From NCBI RefSeq assembly GCF_052425735.1, contig NC_135766.1, positions 11,532,001 through 11,596,000 on the forward strand: a stretch of DNA of 64,000 bases, given 5' to 3'. The stretch comes from Oculina patagonica. Its lineage: Eukaryota. Positions 5,711 through 64,000 of the stretch are shown here, piece by piece (position 1 is the first letter of the stretch; the number at the start of each line of letters is the position of its first letter). Position numbers and translations under genes: made by a program. The notes under the pieces are model-generated. The model saw only the letters and a list, made by a program, of their open reading frames with translations, had not been told where the DNA came from and searched no databases.

Positions 5711-5837
5711 TTTTTAAAATTCACTACTGCGATTTACCAACTTACAATCAACTAAGTGTTTCTCTCTCTCTCTCTCGCCGACGGCGGACGCTGCACAACA
5801 GTTTCTTAAAACTGAAAACCTTGAACATTTGTCTTAC

Positions 5838-7515
5838 CTTCCTTTCCATCCTCCTCTGCCTTTTCCGCCCAAGAGTTAAAAATGCTCCTTTGCTGTTTTT
5901 GATAGAGCATGGCTTCTAAGAGATAATAAATCTTGATACGGTCATGATGTTCCACTGGAAGGAGAAGGTGGTCTGACTTCAAAGAAATGTTCAAGGCAAG
6001 TTCAAAGTTTGGCTTATCAAGTTCAAATCTGTTGAAAGCTGTGATGTATTCTTTGTCCAAAAGAGCTGAAATATCCTTCAGTTTGGACATGAAAAGGTTA
6101 CAAAACCTGTCTCTTGCCTTCTGGTAATCTTTCATGAAAACGGTGCTGTTACCGATGCTCCTTAAAAACTTTCGCATCAACGGATGAATGTCGTAGGAGA
6201 GGACCTTCGCCTTTGGGTCAACCGATACTACTATGCTATTTCGCAAGCCCTCCAGCTGTATAACAGCTTCCGACAAGTCCACCCCGAGGATGGTAGCGGC
6301 TGCTTCGGCAGAGAAAGGGCGGCCACATAACGACACTGAAACGGCACTCTCTTTTAGCCTTTCACTCGGCAGGAAGAAAAACATTTTTCTCAAGCAGTTC
6401 TCTTGTTCTTTGTCAATCCCTTCCTTTTTGTAATCAAATATTTCTCTCTCCTGTGTAACTTTCTCTGTCGGAGGTAATCCCGTTTCTGGGATTCCGATCA
6501 CTGCCTCTTCCTCTATGGTTTCAAGAAGCTTTTTGTCATCTGCTGTCTTCTGCCTTAAGATGGCGGCCATTCCGTTCAGGATAAGGGGATTCCCTCGGCA
6601 CATTTGTACCAACTTATCCCGACTTTGATCTTCTTCGAGGCTACGATTTCCATAGGTTTGAAGTAGTACACTTGAGACCGCTTTATCTAATGCTTTAACT
6701 TCATAATTATCGACAAGAGAATCACCGTGACGAATCGCAGTTCTCGAAGTCAACAAAATCTTCAACTTTGATTTTCCCTGAACACGTTGAAGTCTTCGGA
6801 GAAACGTCATAAAGTTGATATTCTGGTCCTTGGCAGCGTCTCCTTCTCCCCCCGCAAACTGGTCAACATTATCTAGAAGTAACAGCATGTCGCTTTCGTC
6901 GTTTTGCATCAGTTGTTGTATTTGACCGATGACTGGATTTGCTTCATAGCTTACGACCGTTCGCTCTGATTCCGTTAAAGCGTTTAGAACGTGGAAGTGA
7001 ACGCTTTTCATCTCAGTTATTCCTCTAAAGTCGACTTTAAATTTTCTGCCAGGCCACTTTGATAAAGTTTTAATGGCTAGCGTTGTCTTGCCTACCCCAC
7101 TTGATCCATACAAATTCACAACACTCGAACTGCCTGTTGTTAGCTTTGTCATAACTTTCTCTAAGTCGTGAACTCTGCCAGTTAGATCTTCTTTTGTCTT
7201 TACAGCCTTTCGCTGGCGTATTGTTTTGAAGCCTTGGATCTTTTCTTGGATGCTCTCCTTCTTGGTTGTTTTCGGAGTTGAAAACCTCTCTAACAAAGTT
7301 AGATTGTCCTCCGACACGAGACCTTGAGTGGCAAATAAATGCAAACAAGAATATAGATCTCGCTCTTGTTGATCTTCAAATTTGCCTTTAAAATTTCTTT
7401 TAATAGACGAAACGGCAACTTCGAGTTCTTCAGGGCTTAATTCACTTGAAACGTCTTTAAGAAGTTTGTCAAGATCAGGAGAAATCTCTCCTATCGCTGT
7501 TTCGAGCGACGCCAT
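5838..7515 (-). CDS. DED + NB-ARC-type STAND NTPase (NLR/APAF-like immune receptor), first coding exon; later exons not found in the window
   Basis: Starts at ATG 7515 (MASLETAIG). N-terminus is DED-like (LLKDVSSELSPEEL...GLVSEDNLTLLERF). Walker A GSSGVGKTT, Walker B LLLLDNVD, sensor ILLTSR, CRGNPLIL and an MHD-like YDIHPLMR are present. Ends at a GTAAG donor at 5837 (phase 1). Confidence 0.85.
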
Positions 7516-9824
7516 CTTCGCCAAATATATCATGATATGTGGCACCACAATGCAATAAAGTTATGCAGAAGTATAATCAGACATTGTTCATAAAATGATG
7601 AAAACATTCACGCCACCCTCGACCTACAGAGAGCTGTCTTATTTTCCGCATTTAATCTGTACTACAGCTGGTCACAAAGATAAGAAAATTTTAGCACCAA
7701 AGCCATCATCATCCACTCAATTAATTAACTGGTCATGATAAAGAGCATAACCGCGGCAATAATGTTTTGACAAGTGCGAAACACGCAACGCTCAAGGGCA
7801 TAACTGATGAAAATATCTACTAATGATAAAGATGAAATGTTTATTTGTCAAGAGCGTGCATGGGAGAAAGGAAAATATCTGAGTTCCCGATGGGAATCGA
7901 ACCCATGGTAAAAAATCTGTTGTTTTGAGACGACATTTCGGCATTATACTGACGCAAGCACAAGTACAAGCATAACAGCTCTCATTTCACCGTGAAAACG
8001 GCTTTGACGCAAGCATTAGCACAAGGATCAATTTTTTTTTCGTTTTCTTGAGCTTGTTCTTGCGTTCGTGTGAAAACAAAACACCGCATAAGCACAAGAA
8101 AATTGTTTACGTCTGACCATGTCTAGCCAATTACTGAGCACTCGCTTCAAACACCCCCGCGTCTGAGCATTTGAACAAATTAGCGGAGGCAGGACCTTCT
8201 TATTTGATGAAAAGTGCTTTGAAAAGAGTAAATAATAGAAGGTTAAAAATATTAAAATAAATCAGATGTTCATTCAGGGTAACATGGTCCTTTACATAAG
8301 TTTTGGGAAGTATTGAGTGACGATGAAACAGAAGAATTTAATCAAAATTAACGTTGTTAAATCTTATTTAAGAAGCCTGTTCATAAACGTCATACAGCGT
8401 CCGCTTGGTAAATTGTAAACTGGGAGTCATAAAACGGCTTTGTATACCAGTCAGCGAACTCTGCCTACCCTACCCTATAAGGGGTTCAGTGCAGGCGAGA
8501 GACTCCATGATAACTTGCATGCGCATGTAACCTATCCTGGATTCTTGCACTTCTTCCTTCTGGACTCAATATATATTGATATATTTATTTTCCTTTCGGA
8601 CTGCTATGTACTCCAATTCAATTACGAAAAGGAAAAAAGTTTACTGAAGATCTAAGAACACAGTAAAGAAACCTAAATATAAGATTATCCGATTGCAGCT
8701 TTTGCTATGCAACCATGACATTTTACTGTCTGAGTAATTCGAAATTCCATAACATTTCACTGGCGACGGAATCGGAGTCGTAATCGGAAGCGCAGTGTTA
8801 CGATCTAGTGAGCATCAAACAGACGGAGTCGTAAACAAAGTTCAGCTTTCGCTTATGACTTCGTCGCCTATGATCCAGTGAAAACTAGATTGTTGGAGTC
8901 GCAAGCAGAAAGGAAGCACTCGGAGGGTGTGAGAACCAGCATCATGGTTGGTTTGTTTTTCGCTCTTGTCTGCGACTCTGACAATCTAGTTTTCACTAAT
9001 ATATAAGCGACGGAGCCATAAGAGGAATCGAGAGAAAATGGAAACGTTCTGTTTCTTTAGACTCTGATCCCGTAGAGCTTATGAAGATTTATGAGTAAAA
9101 AACGTTTCGAGGGTAAGATTACATCGATGACAGACTTCACATGTCGTAATATGGAAAATTCGAGGCACTTTTTTTCGCTTGATTGACAGTTTCTTTGTTC
9201 TCACGGTGGCTCGCATGACTGCGATTTCTCGGAATTTGTGTTCAACTTCTCGGAAATCATGACTTTTTTTGCAAGTCAAAATTACATCATTATTTGTGCA
9301 CGGTCGTCCCATTTTGTTTAACTTAGCCCTGTTATCACAAAACAACAGGTGATTGCAAGGGTCTTTGGACAGCACATAAATAATTTTATTAACTATGACG
9401 ATTTTTTTTTCAAACTTCGTAAAAGGCAATGTTACATTGGTCTTTATACTGATAAATTTATGCTGACTTATTTAACCATATTCTTCGCAACCGCTTCACT
9501 CGCTTAAAAGCTACCAAATACATAAATAATTTATTTCTTCCTAATAGACGAATACTAACTTTTACAGGACCTAGTCGTCAACCGTATAATTTTAGATAAA
9601 GATAAAGCTGGTTTCCGCACTCTAGCGATCAAAAAAGGCATTTAGCGCCAATGATATATAACTGACTAGGAATCAGCTAGCATTGTACATAAGCACAAAT
9701 AAAATGTCCAGCTAATTACGTCTGCGTCGTTTATAAACACGACCATAGTCTAATTATTGGAAGCTGTCGCTGTTTTCTTAAGTTCAGACATGCTTATGCT
9801 TATGCGCTAGTTCAAAATCAGCTT

Positions 9825-13149: not shown

Positions 13150-14622
13150 TTACAGCTCCTTGCAAAGTTCCACGATGACTGCGGAATCCAAATAAATCTT
13201 ATCTACGCCACAATCTTCAATTTCGTTGCCGACCCACGAGCCTTCTCCTTTATTATTACGCACCGGTTCAAGATGGGCATTCTCTGTCGGCTTTCTGTAA
13301 ATTTCAATAAAGGGGATACCAACGCGCCATTGACGAAATCCTCTTTGTAAGTATCCCCTTGAACGATCACCAGAGACCAACCACGGAGGCTTGGAAGACT
13401 TTGAAGTGACGTGGAATTCGTAGATTTCGTGAGTCTCTTCATAATCTAAGTCGGCATCATCCTCATAAACTAAAAGGATCGCGGCAGTCTGATACCTTGA
13501 CAGTACACTCTTTAACTCACACTTCCACTGCTGATCAACTAAGAAGTCGAACAATGTTTTGTCTTCTCCTTTAAGCAAATGTGCCTGCAGACCCTTTGAG
13601 ATGTACTTGTGTTTTAAAAGAAATCCAACCTTGAAAGGTGAACTACTCCTTTGCCTTTGAATCTTCTCAAGCTCAACGTTCACATTAGCAAGAGCTTTCG
13701 AGGCTAAAGAAGGACTTTCTACGCTGCATTCAAAATGCTCCTGCGCAGAAACAGGGTCTTCGGGCACACGGCTGCTATTAATAAGGGGATAGCTTGGTGA
13801 CCATTGTGAAGTGATAATGTTGTAAGTGATGGTAACTCTGTGTCCTTCAAGGACAGGCTTGACTTCATGAATGCAGTCGCTGTAAAATGCGGCCCACTGA
13901 ATTCTGCTCGTGTCTCCAGAGTGCTGTGAAAAGTCGAAGACGTGCTGCAAGCCGTCATGGTTAACAAGCAACTCACCGCCTTTGTGAGGTGAAGGAAGAC
14001 AAACGACCAGAGTTCCTATCATGTTGTGATCAGATGGATTGTCGACGTGCCGTTTGAAAAACCCTCCTTCGCCGTAAACGTTGACTTTATAGGGAACCAG
14101 CTCTATATACCTGCCAGGAGTAAGTTTATCCTCGATGTGTGCTTCAATCGATATTTCTCCAGGATATCTGTGTATTTTGAACCTTGCTGATTCGATTTCG
14201 TAGGCCAGACGAACCTCAGGATCAAGCACTGTTTTCATTTCTTTTATGTCGCCAAACGGTGCTGGATTGCAGTGCTTCAGCAACTCGTCCAAAGGAATAT
14301 TTGGAAAACTGAATTCTTCCCAGTGATCTTTGTCTTCTTCTGAATTTGTTGGCTTCACTTTTAATATGCACTTCTCCATATCTGATGGCCGTAAACTTCC
14401 CCCACAGCAAAACACGGGTTGGGATAAAGCATGCTCGAGACTATCGATAAGTGGATCGTAAATTTTGATCTCTTCTTTGAAACGATACGTTTTTTTGATA
14501 TGATGACTGTTGACTACATAGCCCAATGGAGGACTGTGGACCGAGTTTTCTACGGCTTGCTCGTATTCAAGGGGTCCATGGTCGGTTTCCTTTGGCCGCT
14601 GTTTAGCAAAAGCTTCAGCCAT
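13150..14622 (-). CDS. Intronless 2OG-Fe(II) dioxygenase domain protein, 490 aa (copy 2, intact)
   Basis: Single ATG-to-stop ORF. YKVNVYGEGGFFKRHVD...GTLVVCLPSPHKGGELLV...AAFYSDCIHEVKPVLEGHRVTITYNI gives the HxD...H facial triad plus the 2OG-binding Arg. Confidence 0.9.
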   Translation of the reverse strand: MAEAFAKQRPKETDHGPLEYEQAVENSVHSPPLGYVVNSHHIKKTYRFKEEIKIYDPLIDSLEHALSQPVFCCGGSLRPSDMEKCILKVKPTNSEEDKDHWEEFSFPNIPLDELLKHCNPAPFGDIKEMKTVLDPEVRLAYEIESARFKIHRYPGEISIEAHIEDKLTPGRYIELVPYKVNVYGEGGFFKRHVDNPSDHNMIGTLVVCLPSPHKGGELLVNHDGLQHVFDFSQHSGDTSRIQWAAFYSDCIHEVKPVLEGHRVTITYNIITSQWSPSYPLINSSRVPEDPVSAQEHFECSVESPSLASKALANVNVELEKIQRQRSSSPFKVGFLLKHKYISKGLQAHLLKGEDKTLFDFLVDQQWKCELKSVLSRYQTAAILLVYEDDADLDYEETHEIYEFHVTSKSSKPPWLVSGDRSRGYLQRGFRQWRVGIPFIEIYRKPTENAHLEPVRNNKGEGSWVGNEIEDCGVDKIYLDSAVIVELCKEL

Positions 14623-24066: not shown

Positions 24067-26105
24067 TACTAGCTTTTTATCAGTCAATCAATCATCATTG
24101 ACAAGTGAAAACCTTTATTTAATACACACAATAGAAATTCCAGCACTTACTTGAAAGTTAGTGTTACCCAAAAAAGCTAAGAAATATAATTGTATCACAA
24201 GCTGTTATATATTACCTAGTAAATATATGAACAGTAAGATTGTGTTTCAGTGAGGCTAAGACCATTTTTCCTAAAATCGCATGTTAACACATCAATGCGT
24301 CATGTGCACTACACTGAGTGTTGACACAATGCCTTGCAAGGCTAAAAAGGTTACATGAAATTACTAAAAATGTCCTTTGTACACTACACTGGGCGTCAAC
24401 ATGACAACATCTTGAGGTTATAAAAACTGAGTTACTGTACATGACCACTGGTATGATCGTGAGTAACAAAAATAATATCAAGCACACCTTTAGGTTAATA
24501 AAATATAAATGTGCCCTTTATACACCATGACACTGGGTGTTAAACGACATAGCACCTAACACTGCTAGTTTGCTTGCATGAAAAGCTTGATAATAAGTGT
24601 CCACACTTGTTGTCTACATGGCACCTATTAAAATTAAACTTCTCTTGTTATAATCCTGAATAACAGGTAATAAAATTGAGTGTCCATTGTACACCACACT
24701 GGGTGTTGACATGGACACCTTAAGTTGCTGTATGTATGAAAAGTTCCAATATGTCCAAGCACTCTTGTAATAACAATTGAGTCAGTCTGCTTTCAAGAAC
24801 ACTGCATCAGTTGCCAGGAACCACAGGGTAGTCAATCACTGAAAACTAATCAATATTTATAAACTGCCTAGTAAGAGCAGTTTTCAACAACAATGGCCAA
24901 ACACAACAAAATGTAAACAACATAATTAACCAATGAGAACTCAGAGCAAATACCATGCAGGTGACTACAGGGAATTGTGGAAAAGTGCACCTTCAAACTC
25001 CAAAACATTGAAATCAGGAGAGTAAATTTCCGAGGCTTGTTTAGATTGACTTATACAGTACTATTCTGACTAGTAGAGATGCAGGCATGCATGGCATTTG
25101 CTATTTGTGTGCTCTAGACCAAAAAAATCACCAAAACCGTTATTTGACCATGTGACTAATAGAACTACTTGAAAGAGCCATATTTATAGGCTAGCCTGCA
25201 AGCAGGCTTAACTGTGGGTCACGCATGTGAGCAGCAAAGCTGGGAGAAAGAGTTGGCTCCTGCTGGCTGGGTTCTCTCGCCGACTCATTCTCACAGCTTT
25301 GCCAGTTGTGTATGTGACCCCAAAGTGAGCCTCATTGCAGGCCATTTTGTAAGTATAAGGTTTTAAATTTTATTAAGAAATGATAGCATGTCAGAGGGTA
25401 TCACCGCAGTAAAAATTCTTGGGGGACCGTAATAGAGTATTACAGTAACTGTAACACTCCTTTGTGTATAAGCTTGGATTTAAAATTATCCTCAATTTTG
25501 AGGACAATTTTGAAGCCAAACATAATGCAATTGTGTATAATTTTCCTCAAAACTTCATTTCTCAAGATGTAATTCCCTTTTTGGATAACTTTTCAGCCTC
25601 TCGCTCTACTTTTCAATGATCACAGCAAGTAGTTAACTCTATTGTTAAGATATTAATAGCGAATTATCAAAATTGTTGATTGACTTCCCTGGGCTTAAAT
25701 TTGGCATCCAGTTGCTTTCCATCAAGTGTGGTCTGGTTGGGCTGCAAACAAAGATAAAGACATAATAATTATTATTTAGTAGGAAAATTAACAAATTAGA
25801 GATTGAAATGCTTGATGTTTTCATTATTAAACTAAATTCATTCAGTGTTTATGGGAATCAGTTATCATTTCATAATAAGTCATCAGAAATAATCAAGATT
25901 GTCCAGCTCAGTTATCTACAGTACCGCTCAGAAATAAGCGTCCCAAAATAAACGCTAAATACGCATATCCTTATGCACATACGCATGCATGTACATGTAT
26001 CATTGATTACATTTTCAGCAGACAAATTCCTAAAGCATTGATTGCAATAATTGCCCATTTACCAGTTTTCAATCAATTATAATATGTTATAACCAATGAT
26101 CAGTA

Positions 26106-27366: not shown

Positions 27367-27649
27367 GGGGGGGGGGCCGGCTTCTTTTTCCCCAGTTGCT
27401 TTACAATTGTAATTGGTAGGCTTGTGTCTTAATTTTTGTTTGGTAATAATTTTTGGTAATAATTTTGTTGAACACAGACAGGCCACAAGTGTGGGGTTTT
27501 TACAACTTTGGACCTTTAATTACATGTACCGGTACATGTAAACGAAAAATGCTAAATATATCACATTATATTCAGGGGACTGCAGGATTAAATTATAATG
27601 GAAATTCAAATAATGGAAAGATACAAAGAATGAATCAAACAATTCATAC

Positions 27650-30600
27650 CAGAAGCCAGGCTCAACATGAGCTTAACCAGTTCTTCAAACTGTTTCTCCC
27701 AGCTGTACTTCTCATCATAAGATGAACGCAGGATTGCAGCCTCCTCAAGCCTTGTCTTCCTGTCAAGTTTTCGCAACTTCTTGATTGCCTTGGCCCACGC
27801 CTTGGCATCCTCAGAATCCACAGTGGATGATGAACCAAACTTGACCTCTCTCAGGGCTTCGCCAAATCCTGAATCCCCATGTACCAGGATGGGCAGACCA
27901 GCAGATAACGCTGCAAGAGCCATCATTCCAAATCCCTGTTCACCTGAAGGCATGATGGCAAGGTCTACCTCGCAGAACAATCTTTTCAAATCTTCTTCAC
28001 TACTTGGAAGGCTTCGAAAGGTTAGCTGAGTTTTAGCAATACCACACTGGAGAAATTTCTTGACAAATTGTCCATGCTTTCCTTTTGCTGCACCAACATA
28101 CACAAGGTGATAAGCTTTGTCATTCAACTTTGCCACTGCTTCAGCGGCAGTGTTAAGTCCCTCTTGTTCAAAATTGTCAGGGTTACTACCACCAAAGATT
28201 AAGATGCGAAACTTTGTTCCATCAGTAGTAGCATGTTTAACATCAGAAAATTGTTCCAGTATACCTGGAGTTAGCGGGAAAATATCTTTGTTGCGGCAAC
28301 GGCGAGAAAATTCATCAGATGTCTTTGGTCCAATGGTAACAGGAAGATCAGCCATTTCACTCAGTCCAACATTTCCTCCGATTGTTAATCCAAAACGTTT
28401 GTTGCAAGCCAGTCTTAATTCTTCCAAGCATTCCAAATCAGTGAACCAATCTTCAAAAGAGTCAGATGCAACATAAATGCTCTTGCACTGGTGACGTTCC
28501 TTGAAAATTTGTGCAATTTTGCCAAACCTCTCACCTACACCAACTACAATGTCATTGGCGAGGTTTTGTGGTGGAAAGTTCAACCACTCAACAGGGTCAT
28601 CAAAACCTGGCTGTTTCTTTGCTTCAACAATGGTAACACCATAACTGGCAGCTTCTCTCTTGTAATTTTCAAACCATAATGTTTCTGGGACCAAGTAAGT
28701 GACTTGAACCTGTGAGAACTTTGCCAGTTGAATAGCCAACTCTCTGGATAAGAATGAAGAATCAAATAATGAAAAATGCCATTGGGCTGCCACGATGGTA
28801 ACTTTTAATGGATTGTCTGAGGTATACATGGAACTTCCATTGCATTGCTCTGTTATTTCTCCAACACAGCTTGAAGTCTTACCTGCGTAATGCTGCAACA
28901 GAGGAGCATACATGTATGTGTCACATTAGCTGACTCAGCATTAATAAGTATTCACATAAGTGACATGTTGCTGACATTTTATATTCAAAATAAATTGTAA
29001 GCTGAGTTTTTCATTAGAAATTGGATTTAAAACACTATCAAGTAGCATCTACAACATTAATTTACAAAATTAAATCTTAATGGCACTACACATACATGTA
29101 CATGCATACCTTTCGTCTCTCTTCTTAAGAAAAGAAGGAGGGAGCTGAAATCTTAAAGGTCAAATGAACAGAAATTTCGATTTTTTTTATTTTTTGCCCA
29201 TGTGTTTATTAAGAGCCAAATAAACATATCTTGAAGTTTCAAAGTAATCGGACATTGCATTGCAGAGATATTGCAAGTTGAAAAATGCTTTTTTCAGGCC
29301 TTCATAATCGTAGAGAGCTCGGAAAAATTGTCGGAAAATTGTCGGAAATAAAAACTTAATTGTGACGTCACATTTGGTGTTTTTGAAGACGACCGCAGAC
29401 CGATTCCCCAGACCGATCCTTAGTATTAAAATAAATGTGTTGAGTGACATTTCAAGCGGTTTTTTCGTTCTGTTTGGCCTTTTTTCAGTTGATTGTTTGC
29501 TGGTTGTTTTTCAGAAACGCACATTTTTTTTAAAAATAAAATAGCTTAAAGCTCAAAAATAGCTTAAACTTTTGTTTGCTGTCGTTTTGCATATCATGTG
29601 AGACATAGGTAGTTTACACGCTGGTATGAAAACAAATCAGGAATCTCTATTGTTCTTTCTCATTAGCATTTAACGAGCAAAAGGTTTAATAAGCAGAATT
29701 ATCTGCACGTGCGTTTATACCTCTGCATGTGCGTTTTGAATCTTGGCACATTTCAAAGCCGTTCTCTGCAAAACAACAACGTGAAATGACCAAATCCTGC
29801 GTATTTTGAACTACGTCAGCCACAACGGTTAATTTTTATTGGGGTTGAATGCTCTCTTTAAATATTCAGCGGGAGCTAGTTCTTAAAGTGATAAAAAAGC
29901 AGAATAATTCCGGAAAGTTGCGAGAATATAAAATATAAATTCATTTTCCATTAGGTCTACGTTGTCGTTGACGTTGCCGTCGTCGTTGCTTTTAGCTCTC
30001 TATTGTCTCGAACTTTGAAAACCAGTGCGGTCTGATCTGCAGAATCGGTCTGCGGTCGTCTTCAAAAACACCAATTATGACGTCACAAACTCGTTCCATT
30101 CCTTCCATTGCAGTGCGCAGTCATTCATTAAAAACGTTTTCGTGAAGCCTTGGGAAATCTTCGTATTTTTTGCTGTAATTCACGCTTTAAGGTCCGGAAA
30201 GCAAAATTTTTTTTAAATTTTACTCAATAATGGATAGTTTAAGTGTTTGGTTGGTTAAAATGGCATTTCAAAATTTCTGTTCATTTGACCTTTAATATCT
30301 GACAAAATGTCACAGAACATACATGTTTACTTTTATTTAATAAGTGGTAACTACACTGTACATGATAATAATTAATTGCCAGTGACATTTTCTTGTTGTA
30401 TTAAAGGACCCTAGTCAGCCTGTGCCATTTTCGATGTCATTGAAATTATGAAAACTGTTTGGTGAAGCGAAATCTTATTGTACTGCTGTAAGTTGTGTTA
30501 CTGGAAGTCTGTTTAATTACCTTAAGCAGTTTCACAGTGATCTCTTTGGTTTATACACGCTCCGCGTAAAATATTATACAGAAACTCTTGTATGTAGACA

Positions 30601-32841
30601 AAAACAAAGGCGTTGCTGACTAGGGTCCTTTGAAGGTGGTACATGTACCAATATACATCATCCTATAACTCAGTACAAGCTCGAGCAATTTGAATTGAAA
30701 GTCGCAAGTTGCGACGAGCAAACTGTCAATCAAAATCGGAACATTGCGCCACAACATCGTAAGGTTCCCATCAAAAGAAGATCCGGCTTGACTGTTATGT
30801 TTGAATCTAAAATAACTACTGTTAGAGTTATTTCTGTACATTCTACTGGTACAAGTAGAGTTATTTTAAAAAGTAAGAAAAGAATTGTCAAAAAGAGTTA
30901 AGGTAGTGATGAAAATGAATTTGAGCCATGCCCACCAAACAAGATTTTGGCACCATTTGGGCGTTTCTTTCAGTTTGGATGATCACTCTGCTAATTTAAT
31001 ATGAGATAACAAACTGGTCAATCTCTGGGGCCTTAACATAATGACTTTACTAGAGACACCCTAGTGCAACCGAATATGGTTCCTTTTTATGTACTGATCA
31101 AATTGAAATTTCAACATCCCAACTGCCCCAGGACAGGCATCTAAACTTAATTTTAAAAAGTGGTTTTTGAAATTCCCATACCCTGGGCCAGAAACGATGT
31201 TAAAACATTAGCCCGGGGTCATATCACAAACACAAATACCCTCACCCCAAGACATGCATGGCAACAATGAGGAACAGATACTGACTGGATTCCCTATCGC
31301 TGTTTTACAAACCAATAGAAAGTATGACCTTGATGGGTTTTCGTGAAAGTAAAATTTTATTTTTTTAAGCTAAAAAAGAAGTGACTTAGTTGGGACAATA
31401 CTTCCAAGGTCCAATATTCAGAAAATATTGGACTTGTGAAAGTTCACACAAAAAACACAAAATTACCAGTTAAGCTAATTTATATGCTAAATATCAAGAT
31501 GGCATCAATGGCACCACATCCAGCCAAATTTGTTCAAATTCCCTTTTCCATAGGGAGGGGGGTGAATAGGGGTACACAAATCCGCCGATCGTGCTATTTT
31601 TTGGCTAAATCCGTCAATCCGTTACCATTTTCATTCAATTCCAAATCCGCATTTCTTGTAAACTTTGTGTCGTATAGTTTCTCTTCAACGGACAGTAAAT
31701 GTTGTTTTCATGCCAATTTTTCAAGAAGATTCTTTTCATTGCTTGTTTTTGCAACAATTCCACCAACATACCGACGATGGCCGGATCCGGACGTCGTTTA
31801 GTATCCATGATAGGAACTTCCTGACATAAAAAGTCCGAAATCGGCTCCAAAATTCTCAGCTTACCCGCAATCCATTGTATTTTCGAAATAAGCGAATCCG
31901 CTCAATATTTTGCAAAAATCCACAATCCGTGCGCTTTTTAAGGTTAAGGTCATTGCCCTGTTTTGCATTGCGCATCCCTACTGCGCAGAATTTTACACGT
32001 AATTAGCGCGCGCGCGTGAGCACATCAACAAAATGGCGGCTTTTTTCTATGCGGCTTAGTCCTCGAGAGAAGTAAATTGTCACTTTCCCTTAAACGAGCC
32101 TGGTGACCTATCAATTTTTTCTCATATTTTGGGTGTAGCGATCAAATTCTTTCTGTAAAATGAAAACAGATCAATTCATGTGTTTGAAAAATAAAAAAGT
32201 GTACTTTGCCAGTACTCGCAGAGGAATTATAAAGGAATTATATGGAATATACATGGTCGTCCTGCTCCTAAACGAATCTGGTGACCCCCCTTTTTTATTT
32301 CAAAATTTAAGTTCCCTTGAAGTAATAAACCAGTAGGCGAAGTTTGGTTAAAAATCTATGTTCAGTTTTATTTCGGGGCAATGACCTTAAATCCGTCGAG
32401 CCGCAAACCTTTTCACCCAACCCTATATGATGTCAAATTCCCTACCCCCAAAAAACATTACAGTAACTGCCTATGTCAAATTCACGTCTATCAGAGAACA
32501 TCAACGAGTCAAATGCCAGCTTACGCCGAAGGGGAAATTATCAATATCTCTAAGTACTTACTGTACTACAAATTATGAAAAACAATTAGCGAGGGATTAC
32601 GGTTCTTCAATCAGAAAGGACTTCAGAAAGGTAAAACGGAAAAATAGTACATAATGAAATGATACCTAACCAAAATTTTCATTTAGATCACCTAAGCAGA
32701 AGGCTAAAGAAAAAAGTAAAGAACCCTGAATCTTACCAGTGTGTCCGGATGCGCATAAGTAACTGCAGGAGGACGAATCCAATGCTCATCTTCGACTTCT
32801 AGTCTTGGTATTTTCGAAGGAATGGCCTCTTCCTCGTCCAT
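27650..32841 (-). CDS. GT-B (GT4/Glycos_transf_1-like) glycosyltransferase-fold protein, paralog A; exons 32841-32737 and 28892-27650, 3' end uncertain
   Basis: Exon 1 MDEEEAIPSK...HPDTL ends at a GTAAG donor (phase 0). Exon 2 follows ttgcag (phase 0) and contains RELAIQLAK, DLAIMPSGEQGFGMMALAALSAGLPILV and YSWEKQ; it ends at a GTATG donor (phase 1). Confidence 0.8.
29157..30291. mobile_element. Kolobok-like non-autonomous element (TTAA TSD) in intron 1
   Basis: ttaa-aggtcaaatgaacagaaattt ... aaatttctgttcatttgacct-ttaa. Confidence 0.8.
31948..32386. mobile_element. Kolobok-like MITE (TTAA TSD)
   Basis: ttaa-ggtcattgccc ... gggcaatgacc-ttaa. Confidence 0.75.
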
Positions 32842-58300: not shown

Positions 58301-58755
58301 GGGCGGAACTAAGTTACGCTGACAACTGTGGATTCAGTGAGGGGAATGTCAGCGCTTATAGTTGAACATTTATTTACATGCATGAACTACAAAAATTGGG
58401 ACAGACACCGGATTTTTAAGTGGTTATAAATGTCAATAATGGATCGGAGGATTTACAGATCCGATCCTTAATGACGATTCACGTTTTTAACACATGAACA
58501 GTTCGAGCAAAACGGTGTGATTATAAAATCACTCTTCCTGCCACTAAACACTGACGGCCAGGTTTCTTTTGAAGTGCAAGACAAAACCGCGAGAAAAGGC
58601 CATACAGCATGTTTTACTTGCTTTATCATAAGACCGTCTGAGTGAGTATACGTATAAAAAGACGATCAATTACAATCTACCATTACTAACTTTTAGCTCA
58701 TTTTCCTATTTACCTAAATAAGCCAGTTTACAAGAAAGATCTGTGAAAGATGGAC

Positions 58756-61700
58756 TTAACAGTTATGGTCCACCAAACAAAACTTTTCCGCAAGATCTTT
58801 ACGATCCACTAAAGGATGACACAAGGCGTCATGTAAAACTTGGAAAGTTGCACCTGTTGCACCTTTAGCTTGTTTCCATTTCAATAACATTTTAAATGCC
58901 TTTTCACAGCATTCCTCATTATCTTTATGAATTGCATCTAGCGCTGCTTCATCGTTTTCCAATAACCGACGCCCAAACACTTTCCATTCCTTGACGACTT
59001 CCTTTGCCAGTCTTTCCAGGTCATCATTTTCAGGTGTGCCTCCTTTAACTGAAACCAAAAGAACACAATTAAAGTCCTACGTTATAAAATTTGAGTTGAC
59101 ATGATTTGCTAAGGAGGTCAAGGAGTGAGGGATAGCAAAAGGTTTTTTTTGTGAGCGTAATTGAATATCTCTTGGCGTGAACTGGCATACGTGAAATGAT
59201 TGGGGTTTTTTATGCACTCGCGAAACGTCATCTGTTAAATTGGCTTTGAGTAGTGGTTTACCGTAATTATTATTTTACGTCGAAAAAAAAATTACTTAAG
59301 TAAATTTATCTGGTCGAATGACTGAGAACAATCACGATGCCACTGCCCAGGAGTATTGCAGGGTCGTTCAGTTCACCAGGTAAGACTACCAATGAGCAGT
59401 CGCGTTTTGGACAATGCACGTGCAGTGCATACAATTAACCTTTTGCCAGGCGCACCGTGTTGCATGTGGAACATGAGTGAAGAATGCTTGGGTTTAGACG
59501 TTTTCTTCATATCATCCCATGAGACGTAATATTTAGTTAACTGGAAATACACGTAATCTCTGTTGAGCTTGTTAAATAAATCTCTGCCGCAGCAGCCATT
59601 TTAACAAGGGAAAATTATACTGGGGACATCACGTTTACCTGGGGTGGTGTAACCACGGATACTGCTACTGCTACTATTACTATTTTTGTTGTTGTTTATA
59701 TTACCTGCACGGTGCGCAGACGTGTGTTTGGAACGTTTTGTGCAGGTACATGATGGCGATTCTCTCTTTCGTTTTACAGAAGAACCTCAAAAGGAAAACA
59801 GGAGTTAATATAAGAGACAACTGAAATTCTCAGTTTTTATAGAAAAACATGAAACTTGAGGTGATTTGAGGAGCAAGAGTGATTAGTTTCACTCGTGCTG
59901 TCAGCGTCCGTTGGCGTGCTAGCGTTGGTAATACCTCAGGCTATTTAGCTTGTGGGCAGGGTCTAAACGGTTTCCTTTTGCGACTTATGCGTACGTCATC
60001 GCACGTGCTTTCTGCGTGCTCTGTCTTTCTTTACAGCATTCCCCTTCCCTCCCCTCTCTGAGGCAGCGTTCTCTCCCCGGTTCCGGGGATTATAGGTTTT
60101 ATTTTACTGTGTTTATATATTTTTTGACATTGTGATTGTTAGCACACTCACTAGTATTTCCACTGATCCTTGCAAGCCTACGGGGATGATGGCCGGGTAA
60201 AGGTTGAGGGCAGACCAATGGGGTGTTACATGTATGTTCTACTACGCTGGGCTGGTTTTGCAATCGTAGCCACTAAGCTTAAAATTCATGTCCAGTGCAG
60301 AAAACTGTACCAACGTGTATTTAATAAAATCACCAAAGTTGGGCGATTTCTCTATCAAAAATGTTGGCTCTACATCTTGGATTCAGATTATTTTAAATCA
60401 ATGACAAAATTTACCTTGATTATGTGTAGTCTGCGCACTGATTTCGTTTGACGATTTGGTACTTGAGCCTGAAGGTAATTGCTTTTGCTTTGCAGTAGAA
60501 TGTGTACAGTTGTTAGAAGTTCCTAAAAGAATTGGAAAACAATATTAGGACAAAGCTGACATCATTAGACAGAAGAACATGATGCGGTAAAGAAAATAAA
60601 CAGCCCGTTAAGCTGACTTGTGGAATAGAGTTCTTTGAATTTCAATTTTCCGAGGTCATTTAAAATTTGACTCAGACTAATGACTTATTGACTTGTTTAA
60701 CTCATAAAAACTTTATTACTTAGCTTAGCACTATAAGGAGGGGGCTTTGCGTCTTTTCATTTTCCAAAGTTTTGCCTTCAAGAGTGTCCTTAAGCCTCAT
60801 TAAACTTACTAGTGGAATAAACATTTTTTAGAGCCTTCAAGTCCACGTAGAGTTTTTCCTCCTCAGGGCGGGATTGTTGTAGTAAGCCCCACTGAAAAAG
60901 CATTGACTACTTGGCCTGGAAAATGAATTGAATCCATGTTGGACTAAACAGTGCACGTTTCTTGGACTTAAAACACATTTGTACCATGTTCTCGTCTAAA
61001 ATTAAACCAGCAGCGTTAACAGCAATTTTCACAGATTCAGTTGATGTATAACATGCTGCAATTAAGATGATCACATGTTATGTACATGTTAATAGCCAGC
61101 TCACATGGGGGTGGAACGTTTACTTAATGCAAACGAGGGTACATGTAATTGTGTTCCTGTTCACTGCAGCATATTAGTTAAAAATCCACAAAATATGAAA
61201 AAAATCATACCACAAACCACAGTGAACATTTCTTTAATCAGATCCTCACAAGGTTTCTCCCAGCTGTACTTTTCATCATAATGCGAGCGCAGTAGTGCAG
61301 CCTGCTCGAGCCTTGTCTTTCTGTCTGTTTCTCGCACCTTCTTGATTGCCTTGGCCCACACCTTGGCATCATCAGAATCCACAGTGGATTTCCATGATGT
61401 ACCAGTCTCGACCTCTCTTAGAGCTTCACCACACTCTGAATCTTCGTGCACCAGGATAGGCAGACCAGCAGATAAGGCTGCAAGAGCCATTCCAAATCCC
61501 TGTTTACTTGAGGGCATGATGGCAAGGTCTGCTTTACAGAACAAGCGTTTCAAGTCTTCTACACATCTTGGAAAGCTTTGAATGGTTAATTGACGTTGTG
61601 CAACACCACAGTGATAGAATTTTTCAGCAAACTGCACTTGTTTTGCTTTTGACACACAAACAAACAGAAGGACATATGATTTGTCTTTCAACTCTGCCAC

Positions 61701-62426
61701 TGCATTAGCAGCAGTGTGAAGTCCCTCTTCGTAGAAATTCTCAGGGTCAAAACCACCACTTATCAACACACGAAACTTTCTTCTGTCAGCAATAGCATGG
61801 CTTACATCAGAAAGGTCACTGAGTATACCTGGAGGAAGTTCAAACACTTTCTTCCTGTAGAAACGGAGAGACGCAGAAAGTTCATCAGCCATCTTGGGTC
61901 CGATGGCAACTGGAATATCAGCCATTCGACTAAGTTGGACAGTAGTCATTATTTGAGAACTGCTGTTAGTGATGCTGGCCAATTTCTCAAGGCAGTGTTG
62001 GCCTTCAAAGAGCATCTCTTCCAGCGGGTTAGAAGCAACAAAAACACTCTTGCAATGGTGACGTTCCTTGAACAATTGTGCAATTTTTCCAAGCCTCTCA
62101 CCTACACCAACTACAATGTCAGTCGTAAGGTCTTGTGGTGGGAAGATCAACCAATCAACAGGGTCATCAAAACCTGGCTGTTCCTTTGCTTCAACAATGG
62201 TAATACCATAACTGGCAGCTTCTCTCTTGTCCTTTTCACTACACGAATCTTCTTCTGGAACAAACAAAGTGACTCTCATCCAAGGGATTTTTGCCAATTT
62301 AATGGCAAAGTCAATGGCAAAAGTTGATTGGGATGACGAGTAGGGAACAGCAACGTGCAGTGGACCGCTGGAGGAAAAACTTCCACTTTTGTCTACTGTA
62401 CATTTTGAGCTGTTATCAGAGCAACA
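58756..62426 (-). CDS. GT4-fold + DEATH-domain fusion protein, paralog B; exons 62426-61211, 60468-60415 and 59048-58756, first exon not located
   Basis: The GT exon is homologous to 27650-28892 with the same intron phases. A 54-nt phase-1/phase-1 linker exon (GSSTKSSNEISAQTTHNQ) follows. The terminal exon LERLAKEVVKEWKVFGRRLL...AFKMLLKWKQ...ATFQVLHDALCHPLVDRKDLAE is a DEATH fold. Confidence 0.82.
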
Positions 62427-64000
62427 CTGCAATAGCAAAGCAGAATGTTTTAGAGCAAAACCGACTGTGCATTAATACTTTTTGTATATGTACCATGAGT
62501 GGTACTATTTTACTATATAAACTGCTTAACTAATAGATTCCATTTTGCAAACAAATTATACAAGTTACAAATTATTTGAGATATCTCTTTCTTCATATTT
62601 TAACCAAATATGGTCGAGTAGATGATGTCATCATTTTGCTTATTTGCATATTTTATAAACTTGAATATCTCTGGAAAGAAACGAGATATTTGAAAACAGT
62701 AAACAGAGTTTTTTCTTCTCACACAGACTTCTTGCTCATGTTTTAAAACGCTTTATACAATAACCGAGCTAGTATTGCGTCTGTTGTGATTGGGTGATGC
62801 CTGTCATCTATTAGAGTACAGACGCACAGATTCAGTTGCACAAAGCAATCCGTCACTTACATGCCAATTGATATTTGGAAAGACCTTCCATCTTCTTTGA
62901 AAGACTTAAGTGTGTTAGCATTTCCCAAGCAAATAAAACGTTACCTCCTGTCAGAACAAAAACTAAACTGATTCTCCACTAAACTAAGTCTGTAAATTCG
63001 TAAGTCCTCTTCCCTATTGTTACTTATTAATCACCTGCTTTTTATACTATTGATAACAGTAATTGTACGGGGAGCTAACTTAAAAACCTACCGGTTCATT
63101 TAGCTCCCCAGCTCAATACTAAATTAACTACAAATTCCTGTAATACCTTATTTCTATTTAATTAAGAATACGAACACAATGTTCTGTAAACTTTAATATG
63201 AGCGAAATAAAATTATTATTATTCAAGAAATCATTGAAATCTGTATGAAAGTGTTTGACTGATGTTGTACAGTTGGAAGACGCTGCGGGAAACAAATGAA
63301 TGGGGGTTGAACACTTTGGTTAATGCTTACAGATTTGAGCAACTTTTCAAACCGGAATAAAGGTTAGTTTTTTCATAACTGACTTTCAATATACCATTTT
63401 TCTGCTTATTTAATCGGTTTAATAACAGAGCTTCGTGGTTACGGAAACTTTATATATCATGAAGTCACTTTTGAAAATGTACGTTGCTAAGCAAATGAAA
63501 CGTCAAGTTTAGTAAAATGCATTATTTTGTCATGTTTATAACTGCTGTTTGTTTTATATTTTAATTTTTTTATTAAAAAAACTGCTTCAAAAATTGCTGC
63601 TTCAAAATAATCTGTCCTCCTCAACAAAAAAATACACAATTATAGCGGAGCTCCTAAGCGTAGCACCATAACCATGAAAGAAGGAACACTATCGAAATGA
63701 GTTTTCATGGTCAACATGGATAGCGGCATGGTTCGCGGGCGCGTACGTACGGCGTACATACCTAGTACGGAGTCGCGCAACATGGCGGCCATAGTTTGAT
63801 GGTAGAAAGAGTGAAGCAAGAAGGCCGTATAAAGGCGGCCTTTGAAATTTAAAGAGGTTTGAAAAGAAAAACAAGAAGCAATGAAACAAAATGTGGCTGA
63901 AAATTACGTGTAGAAAGTAATCGACCGCCAAAAAAGTGGACATTGAGAGCCATAATCGATCGATGACTTTCGTGTCTATCTGTAAAGCCAGCATCGTACA

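Follow-up and report, generated by a model that had tools for sequence, protein, structure and literature searches.

Two genes on the minus strand of a 64,000-nucleotide stretch of the Oculina patagonica genome (contig NC_135766.1, positions 11,532,001 to 11,596,000; hereafter the window, in whose numbering coordinates are given) encode glycosyltransferase domains of the GT4-conflict family that lack the donor-site residues of their intact relatives. We call these genes A and B, and consider it probable that both belong to an old, monophyletic, catalytically dead clade of GT4-conflict domains serving as non-catalytic modules in immune-type gene clusters. The open reading frame (ORF) of A occupies 27606-28913 and encodes 435 amino acids, and that of B occupies 61161-62438 and encodes 425 amino acids. 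ORF A is 99% identical to the NCBI protein LOC144665715. Both ORFs match the Pfam family PF20706 (GT4-conflict), A at 158.9 bits and B at 151.1 bits (gathering cut-off 26), and the matches cover model positions 15-385, that is, the full domain; general group-1 glycosyltransferase models match both as well. The two proteins share 57% identity and both frames are open, in agreement with the initial annotation of this DNA, which had described two diverged open frames of about 400 codons.

In the EX7E motif, both glutamates are replaced in both proteins. The degenerate segment of A, PSGEQGFGMMALAALSAGLP (residues 322-341; 27891-27950, minus strand), carries Q326 in place of the first Glu and A334 in place of the second, with E325, an acid conserved in the clade, directly before Q326; these assignments derive from the ORF, the alignment with MshA, and a table of key columns. 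The corresponding segment of B, PSSKQGFGM-ALAALSAGLP (residues 309-327; 61458-61514, minus strand), was placed by the ORF and the alignments and additionally shows a one-residue deletion and a Lys replacing the conserved acid of the clade. The O. patagonica genome contains at least 61 further GT4-conflict copies with scores of 277-320 bits, and A and B score about half as high as the canonical copies. Among the 30 genomic copies examined, 29 carry the sequence PSRTEGFGLxxLEALSAGLP. Since this canonical segment has the same length and flanks as the segment of A and B, the changes from Glu to Gln and from Glu to Ala are unambiguous. The EX7E columns are also matched residue for residue by PSfnEsFGLvaMEA of C. 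glutamicum MshA. The absence of both glutamates, which the initial annotation had reported with a location of 27880-27965 in A, is thereby borne out; the segment lies inside that interval, and the sequences and columns given for it agree with MshA and with 34 or more paralogs. That the two replacements are shared by A and B also holds, but they go back to one inherited loss and form part of a much wider loss of residues.

The extent of this wider loss was assessed from an alignment of the canonical copies with 120 close homologues of A and from a table of ten key columns for each genomic copy retrieved. At positions 50, 51, 126, 150, 242, 251, 325, 326, 334, and 345 (numbering of A), the canonical copies, 34 or more in number, read G G H H R K T E E S, while A reads F D V S G E E Q A H and B reads - - V S G E K Q A H. 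Two other copies of the dead clade in the same genome, L032 and L034, resemble A and B at these columns, and the four dead copies together read F/L/- D/- V S/L G/S E/G E/K Q A H. The pattern also holds across the 120 homologues. Specifically, A and B have lost the Gly-Gly loop, the His of the GHG motif (replaced by Val), the His of the VH motif (replaced by Ser), the Arg (replaced by Gly), and the Lys (replaced by Glu), in addition to both glutamates. In the alignments, V126 of A (28536-28538, minus strand) occupies the site of the invariant His of canonical GHG, and the diphosphate-binding segment, GRGD.EDF.LKG in canonical copies, has become GGSNPDNFEQEG in A (28161-28190, minus strand), with G242 standing for Arg and E251 for Lys. 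When the profiles of the dead and canonical clades were matched with hhalign, the probability was 100 at 44% identity, and the same replacements were found.

The canonical profile aligns to the GR..KG and E..E segments of MshA, and the residues of A opposite these two pairs are G, E, Q, and A. In MshA and PimA, GR..KG forms the diphosphate clamp, and E..E makes the contacts to the ribose and the sugar. The EX7E motif, the Arg/Lys pair, and the Gly-rich loop with the N-domain His, which characterize active GT4 enzymes, are all missing from A and B. From these replacements we infer that A and B almost certainly no longer bind a nucleotide sugar or transfer it, and on sequence grounds their status as pseudo-enzymes is well supported. 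Several other positions have become or have stayed conserved. Position 325 is acidic (Glu or Asp) in 97% of the clade, with Lys in B, and position 251 is acidic in 98%, with L034 lacking the acid there. H345 (27879-27881 in A, minus strand) is found in 100% of the clade; 90% of canonical copies have Ser at this site, which is near the old EX7E segment in sequence. Judged from the alignments, H345 is a new constraint specific to the dead clade. K138 is likewise invariant. Surfaces shared with the canonical copies, among them the WL..PP segment, W373, and the YSW segment, are still conserved and are candidate sites of family-specific interaction.

A maximum-likelihood tree of 112 sequences separates the dead from the canonical sequences by one branch, with a Shimodaira-Hasegawa-like approximate likelihood-ratio test (SH-aLRT) support of 100, and the Q/K...A/L state is common to all of the approximately 75 members of the dead clade. 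Because A and B fall in this one clade, their loss is a single inherited ancestral event and not two independent ones. The four O. patagonica members all lie within 11.448-11.600 Mb of contig C9, amid canonical copies. Outside O. patagonica, named members occur in Orbicella faveolata, Pocillopora verrucosa, and Porites lobata. Of the four genera, Porites is a 'complex' coral and the other three are 'robust' corals. The dead clade spans both groups, and its loss is therefore older than the deepest split within Scleractinia. Only about ten carriers of the dead-clade signature were returned by a search of 1.84 billion representatives. The Pfam scan of 79 clade members found no domain besides the GT4 models except one weak Roc match in Orbicella, a result that says little on architecture, as most database members are single-exon ORF calls.

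Only two further losses are found in this tree, both on the canonical side. L050 (G000:C9:11495901-11497091) is a canonical-clade copy with two in-frame stops and a Gln in place of the second Glu; it is a real pseudogene in the same cluster, and contrasts with A and B. L052 (G000:C9:11619197-11620384), the front GT4 domain of the neighbouring ROCO gene, has lost the Arg, the Lys, and both glutamates (S, Q, G, A). It keeps the Gly-Gly loop and both His and falls inside the canonical clade, so that its loss is independent of that in the clade of A and B. Across the wider family, the full R-K-E-E quartet is present in 46 of 97 domain instances in which all four positions are readable (50% clustering), a rough fraction in that such representatives over-weight divergent and possibly broken sequences. 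Since the quartet is intact in only these 46, donor-site erosion is recurrent across the GT4-conflict family. The second Glu was lost independently in several unrelated lineages, for example P0219, P0234, P0235, P0242, and P0244 (among representatives P0190-P0337).

The fold of A was modelled with AlphaFold2 from a 79-row alignment, giving a mean predicted local distance difference test (pLDDT) score of 76.8 and a predicted template modelling (pTM) score of 0.72. The model has the two Rossmann-like domains of a GT-B fold, and its best Foldseek matches in the PDB are MshA, BshA, WaaG, and PimA, with E-values of about 1e-11 to 1e-9 and TM-scores up to 0.61-0.70 depending on the target. These retaining GT4 enzymes of solved structure are also the best PDB matches of A in sequence and share its two-Rossmann GT-B architecture; MshA differs from A in the four donor-site residues given above. 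The second half of the N-domain of A (residues 151-211) is modelled with pLDDT below 50. When a canonical copy was modelled as a control from 30 rows only (pLDDT 86.6), the equivalent region consisted of ordered helices and strands. By this comparison of models, the acceptor-side half of the N-domain seems to be degenerate too.

Selection on the clade was estimated as the ratio of nonsynonymous to synonymous substitution rates (dN/dS) by the Nei-Gojobori method with bootstrap intervals. Among the four genomic dead copies, dN/dS is 0.49-0.76, with an interval that excludes 1 in four of the six pairs and touches 1 in the other two; in comparisons with two foreign relatives the range is 0.48-0.88. 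The median for intact paralogs in this genome, at similar synonymous divergence (dS), lies near 0.25, and the constraint on the dead clade is thus two to three times weaker, as expected after catalysis is lost. All four dead copies are open over about 400 codons, and a neutral simulation with substitutions only leaves at most 0.5% of such frames open at 0.1 substitutions per site. Together with about 88 columns that are at least 95% conserved across the clade, these open frames indicate that the dead clade is not decaying. The constraint varies little along the protein: by region, the medians are 0.54 (residues 37-150), 0.64 (151-211), 0.58 (212-300), and 0.42 (301-420); a region under diversifying selection, or a hypervariable recognition surface, is unsupported by this crude test, in which no region is consistently above 1.

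Beyond the glutamates, the initial annotation had proposed that the loss is old, that the fold is kept, and that the proteins serve ligand binding or scaffolding and not catalysis. The first two proposals agree with the tree and with the model of A. The absence of catalysis is strongly supported by the sequence, in which six further canonical residues are gone, and ligand binding or scaffolding would be candidate functions. Among the observations that it had named as speaking against it, a compensating acidic residue and a dN/dS near 1 were checked. The acid at position 325 is general in the clade but is Lys in B, and the other donor residues are lost too; dN/dS (0.5-0.9) is raised yet below 1 in most pairs, and the four open frames are incompatible with neutral decay.

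Gene B joins its dead domain to a Death domain. Contigs from four public runs, which belong to three studies, were mapped over 58400-62700, and contigs of all four runs contain the minus-strand joints 61210|60521 and 60413|59783 with GT..AG ends; one contig of 449 nucleotides extends on into 59048. The runs comprise about 100-300 million letters, compared with a genome of 529 Mb, and given this small size and the splice joints we infer that they are RNA. The exon with the dead GT4-conflict domain covers 61210-62428, as defined by the ORF and Pfam with its ends set by the spliced contigs. It is followed by two linker exons with an open frame, at 60413-60521, bounded by the two joints, and at 59705-59783, whose borders are placed within 1-2 nucleotides, the upper by the contig joint and the lower from the 449-nucleotide contig of run X2. 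The last coding exon (58756-59048) contains the Death domain and the stop codon and is in frame with the GT4 exon once spliced; all four exons are on the minus strand. The Death domain matches Pfam PF00531 at 36.9 bits (cut-off 22.6; E-value 4.1e-09). The joined exons form a single open frame that runs from the GT4 domain through a basic linker to the Death domain and the stop. The spliced contigs, the continuous frame, and the Pfam match thus identify B as a transcribed dead-GT4-Death protein, with the Death domain in the same frame and transcript, as expected of a Death-fold adaptor.

An upstream exon of B, spliced onto the 5' end of its GT4 exon, lies about 3.4 kb past the window end (L034:353-607, minus strand). 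It is in frame, is located between B and the neighbouring dead copy L034, and carries a remnant of a GxxxxGKT P-loop. The exon shares 34% identity (E-value 6e-9) with the N-terminal part of the clade member from Orbicella in which Pfam weakly detects Roc. If it continued from the GT4 exon of L034, a protein with two GT4 domains would result. Within the GT4 exon of B, contigs of runs X1 and X3, both of one study, also contain a joint going back by 1103 nucleotides, from 62428 to 61326, which could represent a back-splice (circular RNA), a chimera of tandem copies, or an assembly artefact.

The dead GT4 genes sit in a cluster of STAND, ROCO, and active GT4 genes. For A and B, the mechanism we propose is as follows. 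The GT-B fold has been kept while the nucleotide-sugar site was dismantled, and selection still acts on both genes, more weakly than on intact paralogs. The dead domain would function as a non-catalytic recognition or docking module, encoded alongside the active GT4 effectors in immune-type gene clusters. In B, binding would be coupled to Death-fold signalling via the C-terminal Death domain. Candidate ligands are an active GT4 paralog, the substrate of that enzyme, or a pathogen factor that targets such enzymes. We prefer a role as adaptor or decoy, by which a GT4-type interaction would be linked to Death-fold signalling. A more specific form of this proposal, in which the dead clade has been kept since before the deepest coral split as decoys or docking modules for active GT4 effectors, read out via Death-fold signalling, is put forward tentatively and has a better chance of failing than of holding. 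If true, it would be an animal equivalent of the integrated decoys in NLR (nucleotide-binding leucine-rich repeat) proteins of plants, built on a glycosyltransferase fold.

Several observations weigh against a conserved non-catalytic role. The acid at 325, kept in 97% of the clade, stands directly beside the lost first Glu, and H345 is invariant; with these two residues, a remodelled pocket with other chemistry or another ligand is conceivable. E/D325 cannot stand in for the missing Arg, Lys, second Glu, Gly-Gly loop, and His. Additionally, dN/dS between A and its closest foreign relative is 0.88 (confidence interval 0.63-1.27), and recent constraint on A is therefore weak. B departs from the clade at 8 of the 88 near-invariant positions (A at 2; clade median 1), and its one-residue deletion falls in the helix after GFG; B may be drifting. 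For the transcription of A, the sole source is the NCBI gene model. Finally, a pairing prediction of A (residues 34-422) with the canonical L015 copy (residues 24-416) scored 0.01 against a mark of 0.32, which is evidence neither way.

Among other explanations, an unlikely one is that the domain is a non-catalytic ligand sensor, whose old cleft would accommodate a free sugar, a nucleotide, or a glycan of microbial origin, with signalling via the Death domain. The retained fold with its cleft-forming strands, the new invariant residues near the cleft, and the fusion of B to a Death adaptor are all consistent with such a sensor. However, the diphosphate clamp has reversed its charge (Lys to Glu, Arg to Gly), which speaks against nucleotide-sugar ligands, and the sensor overlaps with the non-catalytic recognition module proposed here, from which it differs only in the nature of the partner.

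It is distinctly improbable that A and B are still enzymes with a rebuilt site, in which E/D325, E251, and H345 would form a new catalytic or donor centre for a non-diphosphate donor or a hydrolase. Such a site would account for the near-uniform acids at 325 and 251 and the invariant H345, where canonical copies have T, K, and S, and by the MshA alignment these three positions probably lie in or beside the donor-cleft segments of GT4 enzymes. However, the degeneration also extends to the Gly-Gly loop, both His, and segment 151-211, which is ordered in the canonical model; B lacks the acid at 325 and L034 the acid at 251; and the raised dN/dS is opposite to the effect that a new catalytic constraint would have. 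Simple decay, by which A, B, or both would be young pseudogenes of a large, fast-turnover family with frames open by chance, is very improbable and for the clade largely refuted already: the raised dN/dS, the 8 deviations and the deletion of B, the absence of an NCBI protein for B among the matches, and the true pseudogene L050 in the same cluster would all fit it, but the dead state extends across the deepest coral split at about 50% identity with its near-invariant columns retained, all four copies are open against the neutral expectation, the bootstrap intervals exclude 1 in most pairs, and B is transcribed, correctly spliced, and in frame to its Death domain.

The family PF20706 comprises GT4 effector domains of metazoans and bacteria, as described by Kaur, Iyer, Burroughs and Aravind (eLife 2021, PMC8195603). 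PMC8195603 and PMC12314368 report the expansion and the fusions of GT4 in corals, and their passages on GT4 or glycosyl transferase treat the domain as an effector enzyme. A and B belong to the same coral lineage-specific expansion, have the same fold and length, and lie beside STAND, ROCO, and Death genes. In contrast to the catalytic effector of PMC8195603, whose passages on GT4 make no mention of an inactive clade, they lack every donor-site residue compared. The front GT4 of the neighbouring ROCO gene, L052, resembles A and B in its chromosome region and in the loss of Arg, Lys, and both Glu; it differs in the independent origin of this loss, in the retained Gly-Gly loop and His pair, and in its place on the same polypeptide as an intact GT4. 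Mechanistically, the closest precedent for a dead GT4-type domain is GtfB (Gtf2) of the streptococcal and staphylococcal GtfA-GtfB O-GlcNAc transferase complex, in which a GT-B fold without donor-site residues acts as the binding subunit and non-catalytic partner of an active GT4-like enzyme. GtfB is bacterial and unrelated to A and B at the clade level. Literature searches on an inactive coral GT4 clade, on pseudo-glycosyltransferases, and on EX7E yielded no fitting description; they returned only VldE, a validamycin enzyme that actively catalyses C-N coupling.

The coral GT4 expansion is among the largest and least understood immune-type gene families of invertebrates. As about half of the representatives of the family at 50% identity are altered in the Arg-Lys-Glu-Glu quartet, domain counts overstate its enzymatic repertoire. 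The dead clade, chiefly the dead-GT4-Death protein, offers a tractable entry to what such domains bind. Pseudo-enzymes are common, and the finding thus refines a known family and does not define a new kind of system.

Gene A (LOC144665715) consists of three exons, all on the minus strand, and codes for little beyond the dead domain. The first coding exon (32737-32841) supplies 35 residues of the NCBI model (tblastn, 100% identity over model residues 1-35). The main exon (27648-28919) contains the entire dead GT4-conflict domain, as defined by the ORF, Pfam, and a tblastn match to residues 28-450 of the NCBI model at 98% identity. The last, short coding exon (25722-25742) encodes AQPDHT and the stop; it matches the C-terminus of the NCBI model exactly, and its border is the probable one. 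A is most likely a stand-alone version of the dead module of B. Between A and its 80%-identical paralog L032, synonymous divergence is 0.095 in the C-domain and 0.31 in the N-domain, a threefold difference. The low value in the C-domain suggests gene conversion between the two.

Two other frames of the window, both on the minus strand, contain recognizable domains. An NLR-like exon about 20 kb from gene A, with an open frame of 580 amino acids at 5806-7548, encodes a STAND ATPase domain of the NB-ARC/NACHT type (E-value 7e-13). An intronless frame of 490 amino acids at 13150-14622 encodes a 2OG-Fe(II) oxygenase domain (E-value 3e-11).

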